A stretch of DNA of 64,000 bases from Eutreptiella sp. 'Long Island Sound 2002' (Eukaryota > Protista > Euglenida), in the NCBI GenBank assembly GCA_964036045.1, contig OZ038378.1:172360001-172424000 (forward strand), given 5' to 3'. Numbering within the stretch: the first letter of the stretch is position 1; each line of letters begins with the position of its first letter. A program made the position numbers and the translations under genes. Shown here one piece after another: positions 14,786 through 29,022 of the stretch. Below the pieces are notes generated by a model that was not told the DNA's origin, did no database searches, and saw only the letters and a list, made by a program, of their open reading frames with translations.

Positions 14786-14857
14786 GTGGTCATAGTTCAG
14801 TGGTGGAACGTCTGCTCAACACGCAGAAGGTCGTAGGTTCGATCCCTGCTGACCATA
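14786..14857 (+). tRNA. tRNA-Val(AAC)-like gene or pseudogene
   Basis: Folds fully: acceptor GTGGTCA/TGACCAT, D-stem GTTC/GAAC, anticodon stem TCTGC/GCAGA with loop TCAACAC, T-stem GTAGG/CCTGC with loop TTCGATC. Position 33 is C rather than U, and there is no oligo-T terminator immediately downstream. Confidence 0.65.
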
Positions 14858-17790: not shown

Positions 17791-18900
17791 TAGGATTTGG
17801 TATGTGGACCTTTGGAATCCAAAATACGCGGGTCACATTTTCAAGGTCACCGTAGGCGTTGATATGTTGGGCAATATTGTATGGATTTGTCTTTTGGCTC
17901 CTCGCACCTCCGCCGATATATTGATATGGGATGGTTATGGACCTTCCTGTACACGAGGAGATTTCTTTGGGTTTGAGGTTGGTAGCCATGATGGAGCCTA
18001 CAAGGGCTGTGTGCATGTCATTGTGCCGTTCATTGGGCTGAAGAATGACAACCTTTCGGCATGGCAAACATCTACTGATGTGCATGGATGGTAGAGGGCC
18101 CGAATTGAGCAACTGTTTGCTCATTTGTGGCATTGGGGTTTATTTCAGAACATTTGGTCTCTTGGTCCCAACGAGTTGCATCAATCAGTGTGCATTTTGT
18201 TACACTTTACCCAGTTTTGCATCCAGAGGTAGGTGTGTTACCCTCCCTGTGGACTTTCCCCCTCATGTTTGGAAGAGCACGGAAGCAACCGTTGAGGATG
18301 CCACACAAGATGATGTCGGGGATGATGAGGTTGATATATGTGCATTGTGCTGTCAGAAGCACACTACGGCAATATGCGGTGAATGTGATTTGAATTATTG
18401 TGCGAAATGTATTGACCCGTACACCTGTGGGGAGAAGACTGTTTATCGAATAGTCTTGCTTGTTCAATTTGAGTGAACAAATTTGGTGGAACAAAGTTGT
18501 GAAGGTGACTTAGGTATGCTTTTCCTATTCAATGTTGTGCAGGGATGGTTTGTCGCTTCATTTGGTGGGCAAGAGGCATCTGTTGGTCTACTTGGGGGCT
18601 TTATTGGGTAGCGGTGAACTTGGGGACTGAATCTGGGAAAGTCATGATAAAAGTTGCACGCAGGGCGCGTGCAGGGCAAACAGTCCCCCGTGGCAGTTGT
18701 AGTGGGAGGAAATAGGCATGCTGCTCTTTCTGTGTGTGACAACCATTTTCCATGGTTTGCCTAGAAAAGGATTTGCTGTAAACTCACCACAAAGAAAAGG
18801 CTGGTAGGTAAGAGACCGGAGCGCTTGGGGTGCAAACAATGTTCCCCAGATGGACAAGCGCAGAACCACGATTACGTAGTAGGCTGAACCTTTCTGCCTT
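17790..18900 (+). mobile_element. DDE_Tnp_4 (PIF/Harbinger/ISL2EU-like) transposon relic, copy 1
   Basis: PKYAGHIFKVTVGVDMLGNIVWICLLAPRTSADILIW...HDGAYKG...RARIEQLFAHLW with stops or frameshifts, followed by a Cys-rich segment CALCCQKHTTAICGECDLNYCAKC. Homologous to 48160-49130. Confidence 0.65.
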
Positions 18901-19832
18901 CCATGCTCTTTGTTGCCACCGACGGGATGCTCTCGTGCACATTGCACACAACAGCCTCCACTGCACACTACTCTGCTGTGGCCAACATGAAGCATACAAT
19001 GCTGAAAACAGTACCCTCTGCAGTACAGCAGCGCTTTCTCTGCCCCCCCCCCCCCCTTTTTATGTTGGAAATGGTCAGGAGGGTACCCAGGTTGGTCCAA
19101 AGTGCATTTTTAAGTTTGCTCTTGCAGAAAACGATGCACAGGCTGATCTTGTGGGTGGGATTAAAAGCCCAGTGGTTGCTGCCGTGTGATTGTCAGGGGC
19201 CCTACAAGGGTGTTGCACGCACTGTGTGTGCACCGTGCAAGGTTTTCGTCTGTCCGTTGATATGGGCGCTACATTTTGCCACATTCTAGGCTCAAAGGTA
19301 CATTGTTGTGGTAAGGCGTGTGTGATGGGGTGCCTGCAACTGCATATTAAACTCCTACCACCTATTTATGCATGTTGTTGTGACCCTCATGGTCATTTTT
19401 ATTGTCCCTCAGCTCAGAGTTACTATGTCTTTGTCCTGGGCCACCCGTGCTATGTTTTCTACATGTTTCTGCATGTTTTGTACCATTGTATGAGTATGGG
19501 TGAGCTGCTTCCAGCCATTGTGTTGGGCTCTTCACCACAGCCCAGGGACTTTTTGCAGGTATCACTGTGCACGAAGTGCAACCCCCTGACCTGTCCATGG
19601 AAAGTAGCGCATCAAAGAACCACGGCAAGTGACAAAAATGTTACAACCTCTTCGCCCTTGCATGTGGTGTGTTAAGTGGTGGGTGGTTTGGGGGTTGGTT
19701 CCGGAACGGACACCCTGATGACGCTGTGCACGCTCTGTGTGGCAGCGCCCCCGAATTGACGTGCATGTGCGCGCACCACCCTTTGCACGAATGGTATGGG
19801 TGTTGGGTGATTTCGCAATGTGTGTGTTTGCC

Positions 19833-19851
19833 AGTGTCTATTTTTTTCTCG
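19833..19851 (+). other. Relict spliced-leader (SL) sequence and probable trans-splice acceptor upstream of aspS
   Basis: AGTGTCTATTTTTTTCTCG versus the 3' end of the Euglena gracilis SL (ACTTTCTGAGTGTCTATTTTTTTTCG, from memory): one inserted C. It ends 5 nt before ATG 19857. Confidence 0.8.
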
Positions 19852-19856
19852 GCCAC

Positions 19857-22250
19857 ATGTCTGAACACATGTTGTTGGCTGCCCCACATGGCTCCCAACG
19901 GTTTGACCGGACCTCAGTCCCCATCGCAACAAGTCTGGTGCTGGGGCTTGGGGTTGCTGCGGCCTTGGGGCTCGCTACTCTATGGACGCAGGGAGTCGAC
20001 CCTCGGCAGCAGTGGTCAGTCAGCGGCGTTGCCATGCAAACACGACCGATCGTTGCGCGTCCCCACACACTCCCTCCGGCCCATGGCACGCGCGACGCAG
20101 CGGTGCATCACATCCGCGCGACGGACGCCACCCCTCCCACAATGCACGGGCGCCCTTCGCAATACGACCCGAACCGTCCCCCCATCGACGCCACGACTGG
20201 CGGAGCTTTGGCCCCGCTGTGGCTCATCGTCCCGGCATTTGTGGGAGCCGTTTGGATGTGGCTGAGAAGGTCAAGAGCTGCAACTCCGACCGAACAGCCC
20301 ACGCAATTAGCGATGTGCAGTGTCACGGGGGCCTGCACTCGCCCGGATCCTCAGGCCCGAAGGGCACGTCTGATGCAGTTGAACGCAGTGCAAGAAGAGG
20401 CCCCGGACCAGGCGGCAGAGCCGCTGACCATTGTACAGCCGTCCGATGCCACGATTGGAGGCGCGGACCTGTCGAAGTTCTTGGACGCCAGCAAACGGAC
20501 CCGCCTCAACGGGCAGTACCGCGGGACCCACATCGGGGAACAGGTCACGGCCTACGGGTGGGTCCAGGCGTACCGCAATCAGGGGGCCATCATCTTCGTG
20601 GACCTGCGCGACCGCGAGGGCGTCGTGCAGCTGCGCTTCGACGCCGGCGTCGGGGACGGCTCCGCCCACGAACTGGCCAAACAGCTGCGGGCGGAGTGGG
20701 TCGTGGCGGCCACGGGCGAAGTGGTGAGCCGCGGGGCGAACGTCACCGACAAGATCCCGACGGGCGAAGTGGAGATCCTATGCTCCGATCTGGTGGTGTT
20801 CAGCGACGCCTGCACGCCGCCGTTCGAGATCAAGGACGAGGTCGAGGTGCAGGAGGTGCTGCGCCTGAAGCACCGGTACCTCGACCTGCGCCGGCCCCGC
20901 CTGGCCCAGAACCTGATCCTGCGCTCCAAGGTCAACCTCCTGTCGCGGCAGTACTTTGCGGACAACGGGTTCCTGGAGGTCGAGACGCCCATTCTGGGGA
21001 ACCCGACGCCCGAGGGGGCCCGGGACTACCTGGTCCCCAGCCGCGTGCACCCCGGCAGCTACTACGCCCTCCCGCAGTCCCCGCAGCAGTTCAAGCAGAT
21101 GCTGATGATGTCCGGGGTCGACCGGTACATGCAGATCTGCCGCTGCTTCCGGGACGAAGACCTGCGGGCGGACCGGCAACCGGAGTTCACGCAGTTGGAC
21201 CTTGAGATGAGCTTCGTCACCCCCGCGGACGTGCGCGCGCTGCTGGACGGGTACGTGAAGCTGATCTGGAAGGAGGTCTTGGGGGTGGACGTCCCGACGC
21301 CGCTGCCCCAGATCACGTACGCCGAGGCCATGGAGAAGTACGGCATCGACCGCCCGGACCTGCGCTTCGGGCTGCCGCTGACCGACTGCACGGCGCTCAT
21401 GCGTGACCGCGTGGACTTCGTCGTGTTCAAGAACGCGCTCGCGGCCGGGGGCATCGTCAAGGCCCTGTACATCCCCGACGGCAAGGCGTTCTCGCGGAAG
21501 GACCTCGACAAGTCGTTCCCGGCGGAGGCGCGGCCCTTCGGGGCCAAGGGCGTGGCCTGGGCCCGCGTCGGGGCGGAGGGGGCGTGGACCGGCCCCGTGG
21601 CGAAGGGGGTGTCGGAGGCGCTCCGGGCGGACCTCAACGCGGCGCTCGGGGCGGCGGAGGGCGGGCTGGTGCTGTTCTGCGCCGACGCGCCCGCCGTCGC
21701 GAACGCGTCGCTGGCGCGGCTGCGGGTCTACGCCGGGGAGCGCCTGGGGCTGCTGGACCCGGCGGCGTGGGCCTTCACGTGGGTCGTCGACTTCCCGATG
21801 TTCGAGTACGACGCGGAGGAGGGGCGGTACTACGCGATGCACCACCCGTTCACGAGCCCCCGGGCCGAGGACCTGCCGCTGCTCGCCACGGACCCCGCGA
21901 AGGTCCTCGCGCAGGCCTACGATCTCGTCCTCAACGGGACGGAGCTCGGGGGCGGGTCCATCCGGATCCATCAGTCGCACGTGCAGGACACGGTCTTCCG
22001 GACCCTGGGCCTCGCGGAGGCGGAGGTGCAGGACAAGTTTGGCTTCTTCCTGCGGGCGCTGCAGTACGGCACCCCGCCCCACGGGGGCCTGGCCCTGGGC
22101 CTGGACCGCATGCTGACGTACCTGTGCGGCGTCGACAGCCTCCGCGACGTCATCGCGTTCCCCAAGACACTGCGGGCGACGGATCTGCTCACGGGCAGCC
22201 CTTCGGAGGTCGACACCGAGCAGGACCCGGCGAAGGCTTTGGCGAAGTGA
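19857..22250 (+). CDS. aspS: Aspartate--tRNA ligase, bacterial type, with euglenid class-I bipartite plastid-targeting presequence (797 aa, intronless)
   Basis: IFVDLRDREG OB-fold, RLKHRYLDLRR, motif 1 GFLEVETP, ARDYLVPSR, YALPQSPQQFKQMLM, motif 2 FRDEDLRADRQPEFTQLDLEMSF, GAD insert, and motif 3 PPHGGLALGLDR. The N-terminal ~210 aa have two hydrophobic segments (SLVLGLGVAAALGLATLW and ALAPLWLIVPAFVGAVWMWL followed by RRSR) separated by a T/A/P/R-rich tract. Start chosen as the first ATG after the SL relic. Confidence 0.95.
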   Translation: MSEHMLLAAPHGSQRFDRTSVPIATSLVLGLGVAAALGLATLWTQGVDPRQQWSVSGVAMQTRPIVARPHTLPPAHGTRDAAVHHIRATDATPPTMHGRPSQYDPNRPPIDATTGGALAPLWLIVPAFVGAVWMWLRRSRAATPTEQPTQLAMCSVTGACTRPDPQARRARLMQLNAVQEEAPDQAAEPLTIVQPSDATIGGADLSKFLDASKRTRLNGQYRGTHIGEQVTAYGWVQAYRNQGAIIFVDLRDREGVVQLRFDAGVGDGSAHELAKQLRAEWVVAATGEVVSRGANVTDKIPTGEVEILCSDLVVFSDACTPPFEIKDEVEVQEVLRLKHRYLDLRRPRLAQNLILRSKVNLLSRQYFADNGFLEVETPILGNPTPEGARDYLVPSRVHPGSYYALPQSPQQFKQMLMMSGVDRYMQICRCFRDEDLRADRQPEFTQLDLEMSFVTPADVRALLDGYVKLIWKEVLGVDVPTPLPQITYAEAMEKYGIDRPDLRFGLPLTDCTALMRDRVDFVVFKNALAAGGIVKALYIPDGKAFSRKDLDKSFPAEARPFGAKGVAWARVGAEGAWTGPVAKGVSEALRADLNAALGAAEGGLVLFCADAPAVANASLARLRVYAGERLGLLDPAAWAFTWVVDFPMFEYDAEEGRYYAMHHPFTSPRAEDLPLLATDPAKVLAQAYDLVLNGTELGGGSIRIHQSHVQDTVFRTLGLAEAEVQDKFGFFLRALQYGTPPHGGLALGLDRMLTYLCGVDSLRDVIAFPKTLRATDLLTGSPSEVDTEQDPAKALAK

Positions 22251-22260
22251 GGGCTGTGTC

Positions 22261-22305
22261 ATGCATGACCTATGGCCATGCATGACCTGTGGCCATGCAT
22301 GGCCA
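22261..22305. repeat. 17-bp tandem repeat (x2.6) containing a perfect 16-bp palindrome
   Basis: atgcatgacctatggcc atgcatgacctgtggcc atgcatggcca; tggccatgcatggcca at 22290-22305. Confidence 0.85.
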
Positions 22306-24095
22306 TATAGTCTCGCAGAAACCATCGTCATGCGTGACCAGGGTCAGCTACCTGTCCTCTCCCTCCGTTGGCCTTTAAAAGGGCGGTGCAGCGCGCCGGC
22401 GGGGCCAACCCATTGCCCTCCCGCCCCCCGAAATCAGTGCCGTCACGCTTTATGCCACTGCCTGTGGGGCCGGGTGAGGGACGACAAGGGACAGCACGCC
22501 GAGGCAGGGCTGTGTGCCCGCAGGCCAAACTCAGGGGAGGGGCTGCCCACGGAGCTACTCCCGCCCCAGAGGGGCCCTCGACCGGCCTCGCGGCCAGACC
22601 TCTCCCCTATTTCCCCCGCACCACGACCGCTTTGGAGGGGGAGACTGAAGTGCAGTGGGCAGCGACGGGGCTGGGGAAACGGAGGGGCGGGTGCCGTCGG
22701 GCCGTGTCGTCCGTGAACACGCTGCTGCAGGCCCAAAGGGCTGGCGGGCGGCGGCGGGATGAGGCGCCCCCGATCAGTTTTGCACGCCCTCCGTCTTTGC
22801 TCAGGACCAACGGCGTGTACGCGGCGGCGGGGCTGAGCTGCTCGATGCGCTCGTCCTGCGGCTTAAGGGGCCTTTTCCGTGTCCGTTTGGGCCGCATCGC
22901 TGGACCACGTGGCTCCCCAACGCCCGTTTGTGGGGGTGGAGGGGGCCACGGGGAGGGCTTTTCGGGGGGGGTTCCCACCGGAGGTGCCTCACGGGGTCTG
23001 TGAGTGTGGGGGAGGGGACGCACCGCCGGGGGCCGGCCGTGTGCAGCCACCGATGAGTGTTGTCGGGGACACAGGGGACTAGGGGGGGAATGATGTGCGG
23101 GACGGGGGTGTTTCATTGGGAGGGGACCGTGTGGCATACCGAAATCCGACGCCACATATTTGGTATGACTGGCTGGTTGGCAGAGATCATTTCTGGGGGG
23201 AGTGTGCGCGCGCGGGGTGGGGGGGTTCGTGGCTGAGCGTAGGGTGTCCGTCCCATTGCTGGCGATTGCACCCGTGCGTTCCTGCCCCAGTCGCGTGCAC
23301 TCCGCTGCCAGCGCTCACAGAGGCGCTGACAGAGGCGACACACACGCCAGACATTTGGAGGGTGCGCCCCACGACATGCGATATGGGTCACAGAGCCAGA
23401 GGGATCCGGATCAACGAGTGCTGCCCATCGGGACTGCGCTGTATTCCCAGGCGTTCTGCCCGCGGGGTGAGCCCCGCCGACCATAGGTCAGGCGGGTCAT
23501 GAGGATTGTGTGCTCGGGCTGAGGATCCGTGGGCCCTGGAGGCGGCGTGTGGAGCCTGGGGGGCGGGGGGAGGGGGGGGCAGCGGCCAGGGTCGTCTGAT
23601 TCCTTCGCTGACCCATGTGCGCACAGCGCTGTGCCGGCGGGTGTTCCCAAGGCCATGCCCTTTGCTTGTCCTGTCCATCGCCCCAGTAGTGGGGCCTACC
23701 CTGAACCTGCCGGGACCCTGGGAGTCCGGTGGCCACGGGGGCTCAGGGTCCAGCGGACAGTGATGACGGATGCAGAGTGTGCCCGAGGATTCCCGGCTCA
23801 CTGGGCCCGTACCCCACGGGGGGCAGTGCCGCCCTCTCCGTGGGCGTGCGCAACTGCCCACGATGCTTTCGGTTGGGTCGCCGTGGGAGACCGGCGTGTT
23901 GTTCCGCACTGCCGTGTTGTGGTTCATGCGGTTCTCATTGTGTGTGTGGGTGTGCGCGTGTGAGTGTGTCTTTCTGAGAGTCTCATTTCTTTTCGAAAGG
24001 CGCGGAGTGCGTGTCATGAACTGGCGGGTTTTCACACGTGCCTGACGAGAATTCTGCACTCAGCGCTTTTCTAAGTGCCTGTTTGTCGCGTACAT

Positions 24096-24096
<1 letters not shown>

Positions 24097-24145
<49 letters not shown>
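24097..24145. repeat. (GT)n microsatellite
   Basis: Directly visible. Confidence 0.9.
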
Positions 24146-24639
24146 GCTGAGCACCAGCCACTGTTTGATGTTGTGTCTGTTTTTATATATCATGGGTTCT
24201 GCACTGCCATCAGATCCACATCATTGCGCCTTGTCGCTGTGCGGGCGGGATGCCCGCACCTCGTTCAAACCGTGTCTCCGTGGCCACCCAGGTGTTGGTG
24301 GTCTAACTCCAGCCCATGAAGTGGGAGATTCGGTAGGACTGGCCGCGTACCCCTCCTGTCCCATTTCTGCCAGTGGAAGGGTGACGGTCAGGGTCTCAGA
24401 AAAGGGCACTCAGGGGTCCGCCGACACTCAGGAGCGCCTGAACACTTCACCTCCTCCTGTCACCCTGTCACTCAGAAAGGTGCCTAGCCCACGGTTTCTT
24501 CACCCTCCCGTGTCTGCCCCAACAAGAAAGTCGATTGTCCAGTGCTCTGCTTTGTTGCCTTTAGGGGGGGTGTTTGGGTGACGATTGTTCCTTCATTTGT
24601 TCATGTGCGTGCTCCAGCCCCCAAGCCTTGTCTTGTGAA

Positions 24640-28411: not shown

Positions 28412-28467
28412 CATTTCACAGGCACACTCTCACACCACCTCTATGTCAGTGTGCATTTTTTGGTACA

Positions 28468-29022
28468 ATGTACACGGGGAGCCCATACTTCCCATATACA
28501 AATTCTGGCGTCTTCGACGCGCCGCGGCCGCTCTCTCCAATTTATGCTTCGCCATACGGGAGTGCACCTGCGACAGTGCCCAGCCCTGAGCCGGGCTTCT
28601 ATGGCTATGGGCAGCCGCTGGCGCAAATGCCTGCAGCGTATGGCGGACATGAATTCTATCCAACGTATGGGCAGCCTCAACAGAATATGTACAGCACGGC
28701 AGCCCCTTGGCAGACCTATGCAGCCCCTCACAGCAAAGAGAAGATCGAGCGTGGGCGAAACTTGGAGAGGGACCAGGAGCCTGCGCCGGAAGTTAGAGGG
28801 CGCGCGGGCATTTTCAGCATCATTTCATATCTGCTGAGCCGGAGGAAGGAGGGCGATGAGCACGAGGAGCTCGTGGGAAAGGGCTACGAGCGGGACGCCA
28901 AGCTCTATCTGGAGGAGTATGAGAAGTACATACAGCAGGTGGGGATCCAACTGCCCAGCATTGACATCGCGTTCAAAAACATGCGGTTCACCGTCAAGGA
29001 CAAGAAAAGCGGGCAGGAGAAG
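28468..29022 (+). CDS. ABCG (White-family) half-transporter exon 1; model join(28468..29022,31035..31259,33796..34002,34533..34904,39063..39467,40592..40989,46098..46281), 781 aa
   Basis: MYTGSPYFPY... P/Y/G/Q-rich N-terminus, then LPSIDIAFKNMRFTVKDKKSGQEK, ending aag|gtcctc. All seven exons join in frame through GT-AG introns (2346 nt). Confidence 0.8.

Follow-up and report, generated by a model that had tools for sequence, protein, structure and literature searches.

A spliced-leader relic ahead of an intronless plastid aspS gene suggests mRNA recycling in a euglenid genome

The DinoSL-relict retrogenes of dinoflagellates were reportedly described by Slamovits and Keeling in 2008 as the outcome of "mRNA recycling". 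This recycling, in which spliced leader (SL) relicts mark retrogenes, has since been reviewed for dinoflagellates (PMC6050394, PMC5585692). A candidate case has also been put forward for Paulinella micropora, where genomic SL sequences less than 100 bp upstream of genes were read as the product of reverse-transcribed, trans-spliced mRNA, with only 6 verified genes (PMC9311404). The process is so far documented mainly in dinoflagellates, and in the literature that we searched neither SL relics nor retrogenes are reported for euglenids, in agreement with the initial annotation of the present locus, which was not aware of the process being established there. Here we examine an aspS gene of Eutreptiella sp. 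'Long Island Sound 2002' within a window of 64,000 nucleotides (contig OZ038378.1), the whole stretch of DNA analysed. We consider that aspS descends from a trans-spliced mRNA that was reverse-transcribed and integrated, the AG of its relic being used today as splice acceptor, a reading to which we assign a probability of roughly 0.8.

The SL of the species was read from the SL-RNA genes of this genome, in which the exon ACTTTCTGAGTGTCTATTTTTTTTCG, 26 nt in length, is followed by an intron starting GTATATAC; a 5S rRNA gene lies about 500 nt from the SL-RNA gene. Compared with this leader, positions 19833 to 19851 of the window (AGTGTCTATTTTTTTCTCG) are a relic of the species' own SL in sense orientation. 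SL positions 9 to 23 are matched exactly, at 15 of 15 bases (19833 to 19847). Beyond the 15-mer the T-run is modified a little, the relic reading TTTTTTT-C-T-CG where the SL has TTTTTTTT-CG. Such a CTCG ending is uncommon, the whole genome containing 9 copies of it. Five nucleotides (GCCAC, 19852 to 19856) separate the end of the relic from the aspS start codon (ATG, 19857 to 19859), and the UTRs between SL and ATG of other SL-headed ORFs are equally short. The SL-like stretch just before the ATG that the initial annotation had pointed out is thereby confirmed against a leader taken from the genome's own SL-RNA genes, which disposes of its concern that the SL of the species might be unrelated. 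The features of the locus, in window coordinates, are these:

19819 to 19832, forward strand: end of the outron, a TG-rich stretch then TTTGCC just 5' of the acceptor, where SL bases 1 to 8 would be expected
19833 to 19834, forward strand: trans-splice acceptor AG, equal to SL positions 9 and 10, from the joint in the X9 contig
19835 to 19851, forward strand: truncated SL relic TGTCTATTTTTTTCTCG, retained in the mature 5' UTR, from the sequence and the X9 contig
19852 to 19856, forward strand: original 5' UTR of 5 nt, GCCAC, from the sequence
19857 to 20432, forward strand: presequence of about 190 residues, from a Kyte-Doolittle scan and from bacterial homologues, which align from near residue 203
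20433 to 22250, forward strand: mature bacterial-type AspRS and stop codon, from Pfam, bacterial identity and dN/dS
22251 to 22394, forward strand: unique sequence, possibly 3' UTR, with no A-rich tract; dispersed-repeat similarity starts at 22395

Within the window the 15-mer AGTGTCTATTTTTTT has a single occurrence, to which a tolerance of 2 mismatches adds no other, against a mean of 0.06 in the shuffled-window control; a 21-nt stretch of the SL (positions 6 to 26, CTGAGTGTCTATTTTTTTTCG) has no match within the window with up to 3 mismatches allowed. The genome has one SL 15-mer for every 344 kb or so (6,638 in 2.28 Gb), and by simple arithmetic the chance that one falls close to a given ATG, no more than about 25 nt away and on the right strand, is roughly 4e-5 per gene. 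Mismatches to the SL are unevenly distributed around the AG, with 5 in 8 positions upstream versus 1 in 18 downstream (Fisher test, p=0.0045). Because SL bases 1 to 8 are unrecognisable upstream of the AG, where the match (3 of 8) amounts to chance similarity, a full-length SL at the aspS locus is undemonstrated. The alignment of SL TTTCTGAG with genomic TTTGCCAG proposed in the initial annotation stands as a reading but falls to chance level once the AG is left out, and the proposed mutation of an SL-internal GAG to CAG cannot be shown from these 8 nt. The outrons of E. gracilis have as their consensus a pyrimidine tract rich in C, together with CAG (PMC11170887).

Splicing at the relic is seen in one Logan contig from a 2013 run, X9, whose RNA label is a guess. 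This cDNA-like contig aligns to positions 19834 to 20214 and carries 12 unaligned SL letters in front; its 5' end is the 3' end of a variant SL (CTATTTCTTTTC, then G), a leader for which this genome has SL-RNA genes. The G at 19834 is possibly the last base of the SL, and the joint is taken as 19834|19835. Since aspS is present in single copy, the contig does not come from another genomic locus. With the limits of one contig and a guessed label, the mature aspS mRNA therefore carries a fresh SL and then the truncated relic, precisely the arrangement that had been predicted, with a new SL at 19834/19835 followed by TGTCTATTTTTTTCTCG. The position of the splice site identifies the ATG at 19857 as the true start of the protein, and not that at 19791, where the stored gene model P0001 (819 aa) begins, reading through the relic. 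Public transcript assemblies gave no record for the exact protein or for its E. gracilis homologue P0002. No SL was seen in a related euglenid transcript (L084, from P0003), but this sequence is cut at its 5' end and is thus unable to date the relic.

The ORF that follows the relic (19857 to 22250, forward strand) runs uninterrupted and intronless through 797 codons (2.39 kb). Its Pfam matches, PF01336 (tRNA_anti-codon OB fold), PF00152 (tRNA-synt_2; E=5e-115, 384 bits) and PF02938 (GAD insert), have the domain order of AspRS, an OB anticodon-binding domain and then a class II catalytic core with GAD insert, and the AspRS core motifs are invariant in the homologue alignment. The closest non-euglenid homologues are bacterial, several of them named as Myxococcota or Deltaproteobacteria MAGs, and identity between the mature domain and bacterial AspRS is about 70%. 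Class I euglenid leaders combine a signal-peptide-like hydrophobic segment with a second, stop-transfer segment about 60 to 70 residues on, a spacing that Durnford and Gray reportedly gave in 2006. The Kyte-Doolittle scan places hydrophobic segments at residues 19 to 45 and 114 to 136 of the presequence, which appears to be a plastid-targeting leader of this class; the product is presumably imported into the plastid. The E. gracilis homologue has an analogous leader and an AspRS that is only 76% identical, from which it follows that the genome does not belong to the E. gracilis strain whose transcriptome has been published. These results bear out the earlier description of an intron-free 2.4-kb aspS complete with plastid leader. 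Compared with another euglenid's transcript, dN is 0.19 and dS is 0.98, and the dN/dS of about 0.2, together with the intact ORF, indicates that aspS is functional and under purifying selection.

The gene is the sole plastid- or bacterial-type AspRS gene in this genome. The initial annotation had called for a search for an intron-containing parent, which came back empty: no intron-bearing parent or paralogue of aspS was found in the genome. Given its identity to bacterial AspRS, the gene perhaps never had introns, in which case their absence adds little to the argument. The earlier statement that introns are usual in nearby genes holds for ABCG, the one gene verified. Its start lies at 28468 and it is split over about 12 kb, parts of the ABC_tran and ABC2_membrane domains falling in different open frames (31035, 34494, 38976 and 40469). 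Six nucleotides 5' of the ATG of this intron-containing gene there is a weaker SL-like motif, AGTGTGCATTTTTT, and a similar one is found at 18187. With 35 genomic copies versus 3 in the control, the ABCG motif could not be established as an SL relic.

The perfect 26-nt SL has 2,588 copies in the genome versus 0 in the control, and among the 6,638 copies of the SL 15-mer only 34 carry the SL-RNA intron motif. In most of the other copies all 26 nt of the SL are preserved, among them the 8 bases that precede the AG. At 104 sites (0 in the control) the 3' end of an SL is joined to TGTCTATTT, forming a tandem SL|TGTCTA junction in which the full leader is followed by the same truncated unit that constitutes the aspS relic, TGTCTATTTTTTTCTCG. 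These tandems reach up to four units and typically stand ahead of long intronless ORFs. ORFs of at least 250 aa starting no more than 300 nt from an SL were found at 18 of 41 sampled loci versus 4, 2 and 0 of 41 in three controls, in a sample that includes repeated families and whose loci are therefore not independent; many SL-headed copies in the genome belong to such families. On balance, these patterns incline us to the view that euglenid genomes undergo mRNA recycling on a large scale and in the dinoflagellate style, in which thousands of trans-spliced RNAs of host genes and transposons are copied back, some of them repeatedly, and of which aspS would be an orphan retrogene.

The hallmarks that define a LINE-type processed retrocopy, a poly(A) remnant with target-site duplications, were looked for at aspS and not found. 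No 15-nt window with at least 9 A occurs in 22251 to 24100, and no convincing target-site duplication was seen, the only word shared with the 5' flank being the low-complexity TGTGTGTGT (19819 and 23939); the initial annotation had likewise reported neither scar. Among the SL-headed ORFs elsewhere, an A-rich tail was found only at L013, in the form (A6-16 TTCC)n, within the 1.5 kb flanks examined. The GC-rich block of 1.7 kb 3' of the aspS stop has no Pfam match and consists in part of old dispersed repeats, with similarity from 22395. An SL-headed repeat lies at 23968, only 4 kb away from the aspS relic.

In the history that we favor, the source mRNA would have begun with the SL and 5 nt of UTR and continued through the plastid presequence into the AspRS body. 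This mature mRNA would have been reverse-transcribed and integrated into the genome, probably by a LINE reverse transcriptase acting in trans, and the integrated copy would have come to be transcribed from upstream sequence. A new leader would then be spliced on at the AG within the inherited SL (19833 to 19834), giving an mRNA composed of a fresh SL, TGTCTATTTTTTTCTCG, GCCAC and AUG. We infer both the reverse-transcription and integration event and the loss of the parent gene. The sense SL upstream of the gene, the addition of a leader at the relic's AG and a process at work throughout the genome are features of an SL-relic retrogene.

Other histories must be weighed against this one. The cDNA of the aspS mRNA could have recombined with the original locus and erased introns in place, with no retroposition to a new site. 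This would agree with the absence of a second aspS copy and with the lack of poly(A) and target-site duplication, and Kinetoplastea, the sister group, provide documented precedent for intron loss mediated by reverse transcriptase (PMC11613528). However, homologous recombination would not bring a non-homologous SL to the 5' end, most dinoflagellate retrogenes are parentless orphans as well (PMC6050394), and the thousands of dispersed SL-headed copies show integration at new sites to be the common route; we regard replacement in place as unlikely. Somewhat less likely still is that aspS is intronless because it was transferred horizontally from bacteria, with the SL-like 19-mer being a fragment of an unrelated SL repeat that supplied an acceptor. 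The bacterial affinity of its nearest non-euglenid homologues (about 70% identity) and the abundance of SL-headed repeats, one of them at 23968, speak for such an origin. Yet a sense relic 5 nt from the ATG is expected by chance only about 4e-5 times per gene, and no SL-headed-repeat sequence follows the relic, the ORF beginning at once. A transfer would also have to be old, given the comparable presequence of the E. gracilis homologue (76% identity), leaving time to gain introns, which the neighbouring gene does have.

Rather than being a historical relic, the SL-like sequence could be an acceptor or 5' UTR context shaped by selection or convergence. This finds some encouragement in the weaker motif before the intron-containing ABCG gene and in its counterpart at 18187, but that motif has only 35 copies (control 3), where the true SL core has 6,638. 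Moreover, elsewhere in the genome copies include the SL bases on the outron side, most of them the full leader, and exact SL|TGTCTA junctions, and such junctions can enter DNA only by splicing and subsequent reverse transcription; a general acceptor context, which the initial annotation had named as grounds for rejection, is accordingly highly improbable. Since a sequence that has no introns and starts with an SL resembles cDNA, we also considered contamination by cDNA or an error of assembly, and found nothing in favor of this. Short-read contigs from three runs and two samples, one contig per run, span 19518 to 24090 with 0 differences and include 315 nt of upstream non-coding sequence, and the same protein is found on a 2.1-Mb contig (P0001). 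The genomic sequence, unlike cDNA, is without SL bases 1 to 8 and without poly(A). The earlier worry about an artefact can be set aside as having a negligible probability. Descent of aspS from a recycled mRNA thus remains the preferred explanation.

If this is true, each copy arrives ready for trans-splicing, an AG acceptor being built into the SL, and this internal AG could explain how new retrocopies without signals of their own are processed. Even an essential single-copy organellar gene, plastid aspS, would be an orphan retrogene, and retroposition would rank among the main ways in which genes of this lineage are duplicated, relocated and stripped of introns. The finding bears on the origin of intronless genes in an intron-rich genome. 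The SL relic is a built-in tag of retroposition that does not depend on introns and that lets events be dated and counted directly in a 2-Gb genome with poorly understood gene structures. The same process would have originated independently in dinoflagellates and euglenids, unrelated lineages that use SLs, a case of convergence.

The locus shares features with several known systems. Like the processed retrogenes and pseudogenes produced by LINEs in animals, aspS would be a mature mRNA turned into an integrated copy without introns, probably by a LINE reverse transcriptase; the poly(A) tail and target-site duplication that define animal retrocopies were not found at aspS, where a 5' tag identifies the copy instead. 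The protein resembles bacterial-type (class IIb) AspS in its OB fold, its catalytic core with GAD insert and the roughly 70% identity of its mature part, but differs in its eukaryotic presequence of about 190 residues and in being made from a nuclear, trans-spliced mRNA. Compared with the 6 verified genes of Paulinella micropora (PMC9311404), this genome has thousands of SL copies and 104 tandem junctions. The closest likeness is with dinoflagellate mRNA recycling. The lineage here is Euglenida (Discoba), the SL is 26 nt long and T-rich, the relic lies 5 nt from the ATG rather than the 50 to 100 nt upstream reported for dinoflagellate relicts, the genome is otherwise intron-rich, and many SL-headed copies are repeated families. 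However, in both the organism's own SL is encoded in the genome ahead of genes and the relic's AG serves as acceptor, and aspS, like most dinoflagellate retrogenes, is an orphan with no identifiable parent. In both, a fresh SL precedes the truncated relic on the mRNA, and tandem relics represent repeated cycles.

The region in front of aspS, an intronless gene for a plastid-type aspartyl-tRNA synthetase (AspRS), reads in order ...GTGTGTGTTTGCC, AG (19833-19834), TGTCTATTTTTTTCTCG, GCCAC and the ATG at 19857. The 15-mer AGTGTCTATTTTTTT occurs a single time in the window even when up to 2 mismatches are allowed (shuffle mean 0.06). The spliced leader (SL) was defined from the SL-RNA genes that this 15-mer picked up in the same genome, in which the exon ACTTTCTGAGTGTCTATTTTTTTTCG is followed by a conserved intron starting with GTATATACTCGCTCC. 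The exact 15-nt match described in the initial annotation is identical to positions 9-23 of this leader, which is the species' own, and is followed in the relic by one change within the T-run. The resulting CTCG ending is best read as a mutation, given its rarity (9 genome copies).

Features of the window
14786-14857, + strand: tRNA gene (Rfam RF00005, 60 bits)
18187-18200: near-copy of the SL-like TCAGTGTGCATTTT
19833-19851: SL relic
19857-22250: aspS open reading frame
23968-23996: second, degenerate SL copy (CTTTCTGAGAGTCTCATTTCTTTTCG)
28448-28461: TCAGTGTGCATTTT, SL-like, 12/14 core bases
From 28468: ABCG gene

A 5S rRNA gene lies ~500 nt from an SL-RNA gene, a linkage of the kind known from Euglena. 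SL-RNA genes with an adjoining 5S rRNA gene were located at C1:29 kb-458 kb and C13:43 kb-390 kb (L001-L012, L014), near the starts of these contigs and spaced ~10-56 kb apart, not in tight 0.6-kb arrays.

The reuse of the relic as an acceptor is recorded in a single 393-nt contig from X9, a 2013 sequencing run, presumably of RNA, with the same organism label. This contig aligns to 19834-20214 with 0 differences, and the 12 letters ahead of the aligned part, CTATTTCTTTTC, mismatch the genome; with the G at 19834 added, they read as the 3' end of a leader that has one T-to-C difference. This variant leader (TTTCTTTT in the T-run) is real, having 44 genome copies (control motif, 0) and being encoded by SL-RNA genes with a normal intron on contigs C9, C20 and C23. 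With aspS present as a single copy, no second place in the genome could have given rise to this contig. It must be a cDNA of a trans-spliced message, its SL joined at 19834/19835 and followed by TGTCTATTTTTTTCTCGGCCACATG, precisely the tandem SL that had been predicted. It shows, furthermore, that the first AUG in the aspS mRNA is the one at 19857. The stored model P0001 (819 residues) starts at the in-frame ATG 19791 and translates through the relic; it is 22 residues too long, since the trans-splice site removes ATG 19791.

The aspS locus is no artefact. Three runs of 2024, made from two samples, each yield one contig that covers 19518-24090 with 0 differences, 315 nt upstream of the relic included. 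These runs are almost certainly genomic DNA, given the ~0.9-1.3 Gb of short contigs in each, and possibly the same data from which the assembly was built. Of the 31-mers sampled from 19300-24200, the estuary metatranscriptomes X5, X6 and X8 contained 9-17%, so those estuaries may harbour this organism or one very closely related to it.

Downstream of the relic, the frame runs for 797 codons uninterrupted by a stop, and Pfam assigned it an OB anticodon-binding fold, a class II catalytic core (E=5e-115) and a GAD insert, that is, a bacterial-type AspRS. Its first ~190 residues have no bacterial counterpart and contain two hydrophobic segments (residues 19-45 and 114-136), an arrangement that follows the class I pattern of euglenid plastid presequences. 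The gene is under purifying selection, as dN is 0.19 and dS 0.98 in comparison with L084, a transcript of another euglenid. Searches of the 2.28-Gb genome with the protein itself and its E. gracilis homologue returned this locus and weak paralogues only, and none was a parent copy. Introns are normal in the region, since the ABC_tran and ABC2_membrane domains of the neighbouring ABCG gene lie in separate open frames over ~12 kb.

The lack of introns admits another explanation. Mature AspRS (20433-22250) is ~70% identical to AspRS from bacterial metagenomes, the named matches being Myxococcota or Deltaproteobacteria MAGs, and by identity these, not cyanobacteria or green algae, are its closest matches. 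Bacterial ancestry follows from this, and aspS may have lacked introns from the start. A comparable presequence is already present in E. gracilis EG_transcript_3395 (76% identical), which makes the transfer old; the sequences suggest horizontal acquisition before the split from E. gracilis. The relic is stronger evidence for retroposition than the absence of introns. At the 3' end, renewed search of the flanks agreed with the initial annotation in finding neither poly-A scar nor target-site duplication: no A-rich tract follows the stop codon, and TGTGTGTGT is the only word that the downstream region has in common with the 5' flank. The 3' flank consists of 144 unique bases followed by old dispersed GC-rich repeats.

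The two sides of the relic AG are unequally preserved. Upstream, SL bases 1-8 are absent, 3/8 bases matching the SL, which is chance level; downstream, a single base of 18 has changed (Fisher p=0.0045 for the contrast). Possibly the copy is 5'-truncated, or drift or selection has brought the outron side closer to the C-rich CAG acceptor consensus (PMC11170887); constraint on the UTR side could also account for the contrast. Conversion of the SL-internal GAG into a CAG acceptor, as originally proposed, is plausible.

The recycling process proposed for aspS proved widespread. The SL 15-mer has 6,638 genome matches (reversed control, 10), of which only 34 copies carry the strict SL-RNA intron motif; the perfect 26-nt SL has 2,588 (control, 0), dispersed along chromosomes. 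The tandem junction of TTTTTTTTCG with TGTCTATTTTTTT was matched 104 times (control, 0); its only route is that a new SL is spliced at the AG within an older SL already encoded in DNA and the product then undergoes another round of reverse transcription. Reuse of the leader's own AG is common in this genome. In the 30 loci sampled, the tandem layout is a full SL and one, two or three truncated units, with a short UTR leading to an ATG. At 18 of 41 non-redundant loci, an ORF of at least 250 aa started within 300 nt of the SL, against 4, 2 and 0 of 41 in three control placements, many of these ORFs belonging to repeated families, so that the 41 loci are not independent events. Host-gene-like examples encode one C-type lectin domain and one 2OG-Fe(II) oxygenase domain. 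An ORF with a 2OG-Fe(II) oxygenase domain behind an SL and tandem relic (L062:262-1491, minus strand) is part of a very large family, whose 72 clusters at 90% identity come entirely from Mb-scale contigs in the ENA source and 0 from any other source.

Other SL-headed copies differ in form. L013, ~190 nt long, ends in (A6-16 TTCC)n, the only A-rich tail among the sampled loci, and is SINE-like or a retro-pseudogene. Long C-runs or G-runs directly precede many copies (L021, L023, L026, L049, L065-L067, L074), and telomere-like CCCTAA repeats lie ahead of a truncated SL in L064; candidate causes are bases added without a template at the 5' junction, preference for a certain insertion target, or membership of a larger repeat. 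In the window, the copy at 23968-23996 (also L025), with a TG-rich tract before it and AAAGGCGC... after it, heads a short high-copy repeat whose genomic-contig depth is ~50-90x that of the unique flank. Other loci share this SL-plus-AAAGGCGC head. The SL-like 14-mer in front of the ABCG gene, 6 nt ahead of its ATG, has 35 genome copies (control, 3) and may be an old relic ahead of a gene with introns.

Taken together, a processed aspS mRNA would have been reverse-transcribed and integrated, and the retrocopy would be transcribed from upstream sequence; the relic AG serves as 3' splice site for a new SL, as the X9 contig shows. The parent gene would have been lost, or replaced in place, and the presequence points to import of the AspRS into the plastid.

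The literature searched, including the E. gracilis draft-genome, chromosome-level-genome and intron papers and the Rhabdomonas paper, yielded no report of mRNA recycling in euglenids. A small-scale parallel has been proposed in Paulinella (PMC9311404). The features that define mRNA recycling in dinoflagellates recur here: the SL is encoded in the genome and its internal AG reused, relics stand in tandem, and retrogenes are orphans (PMC6050394, PMC5585692).
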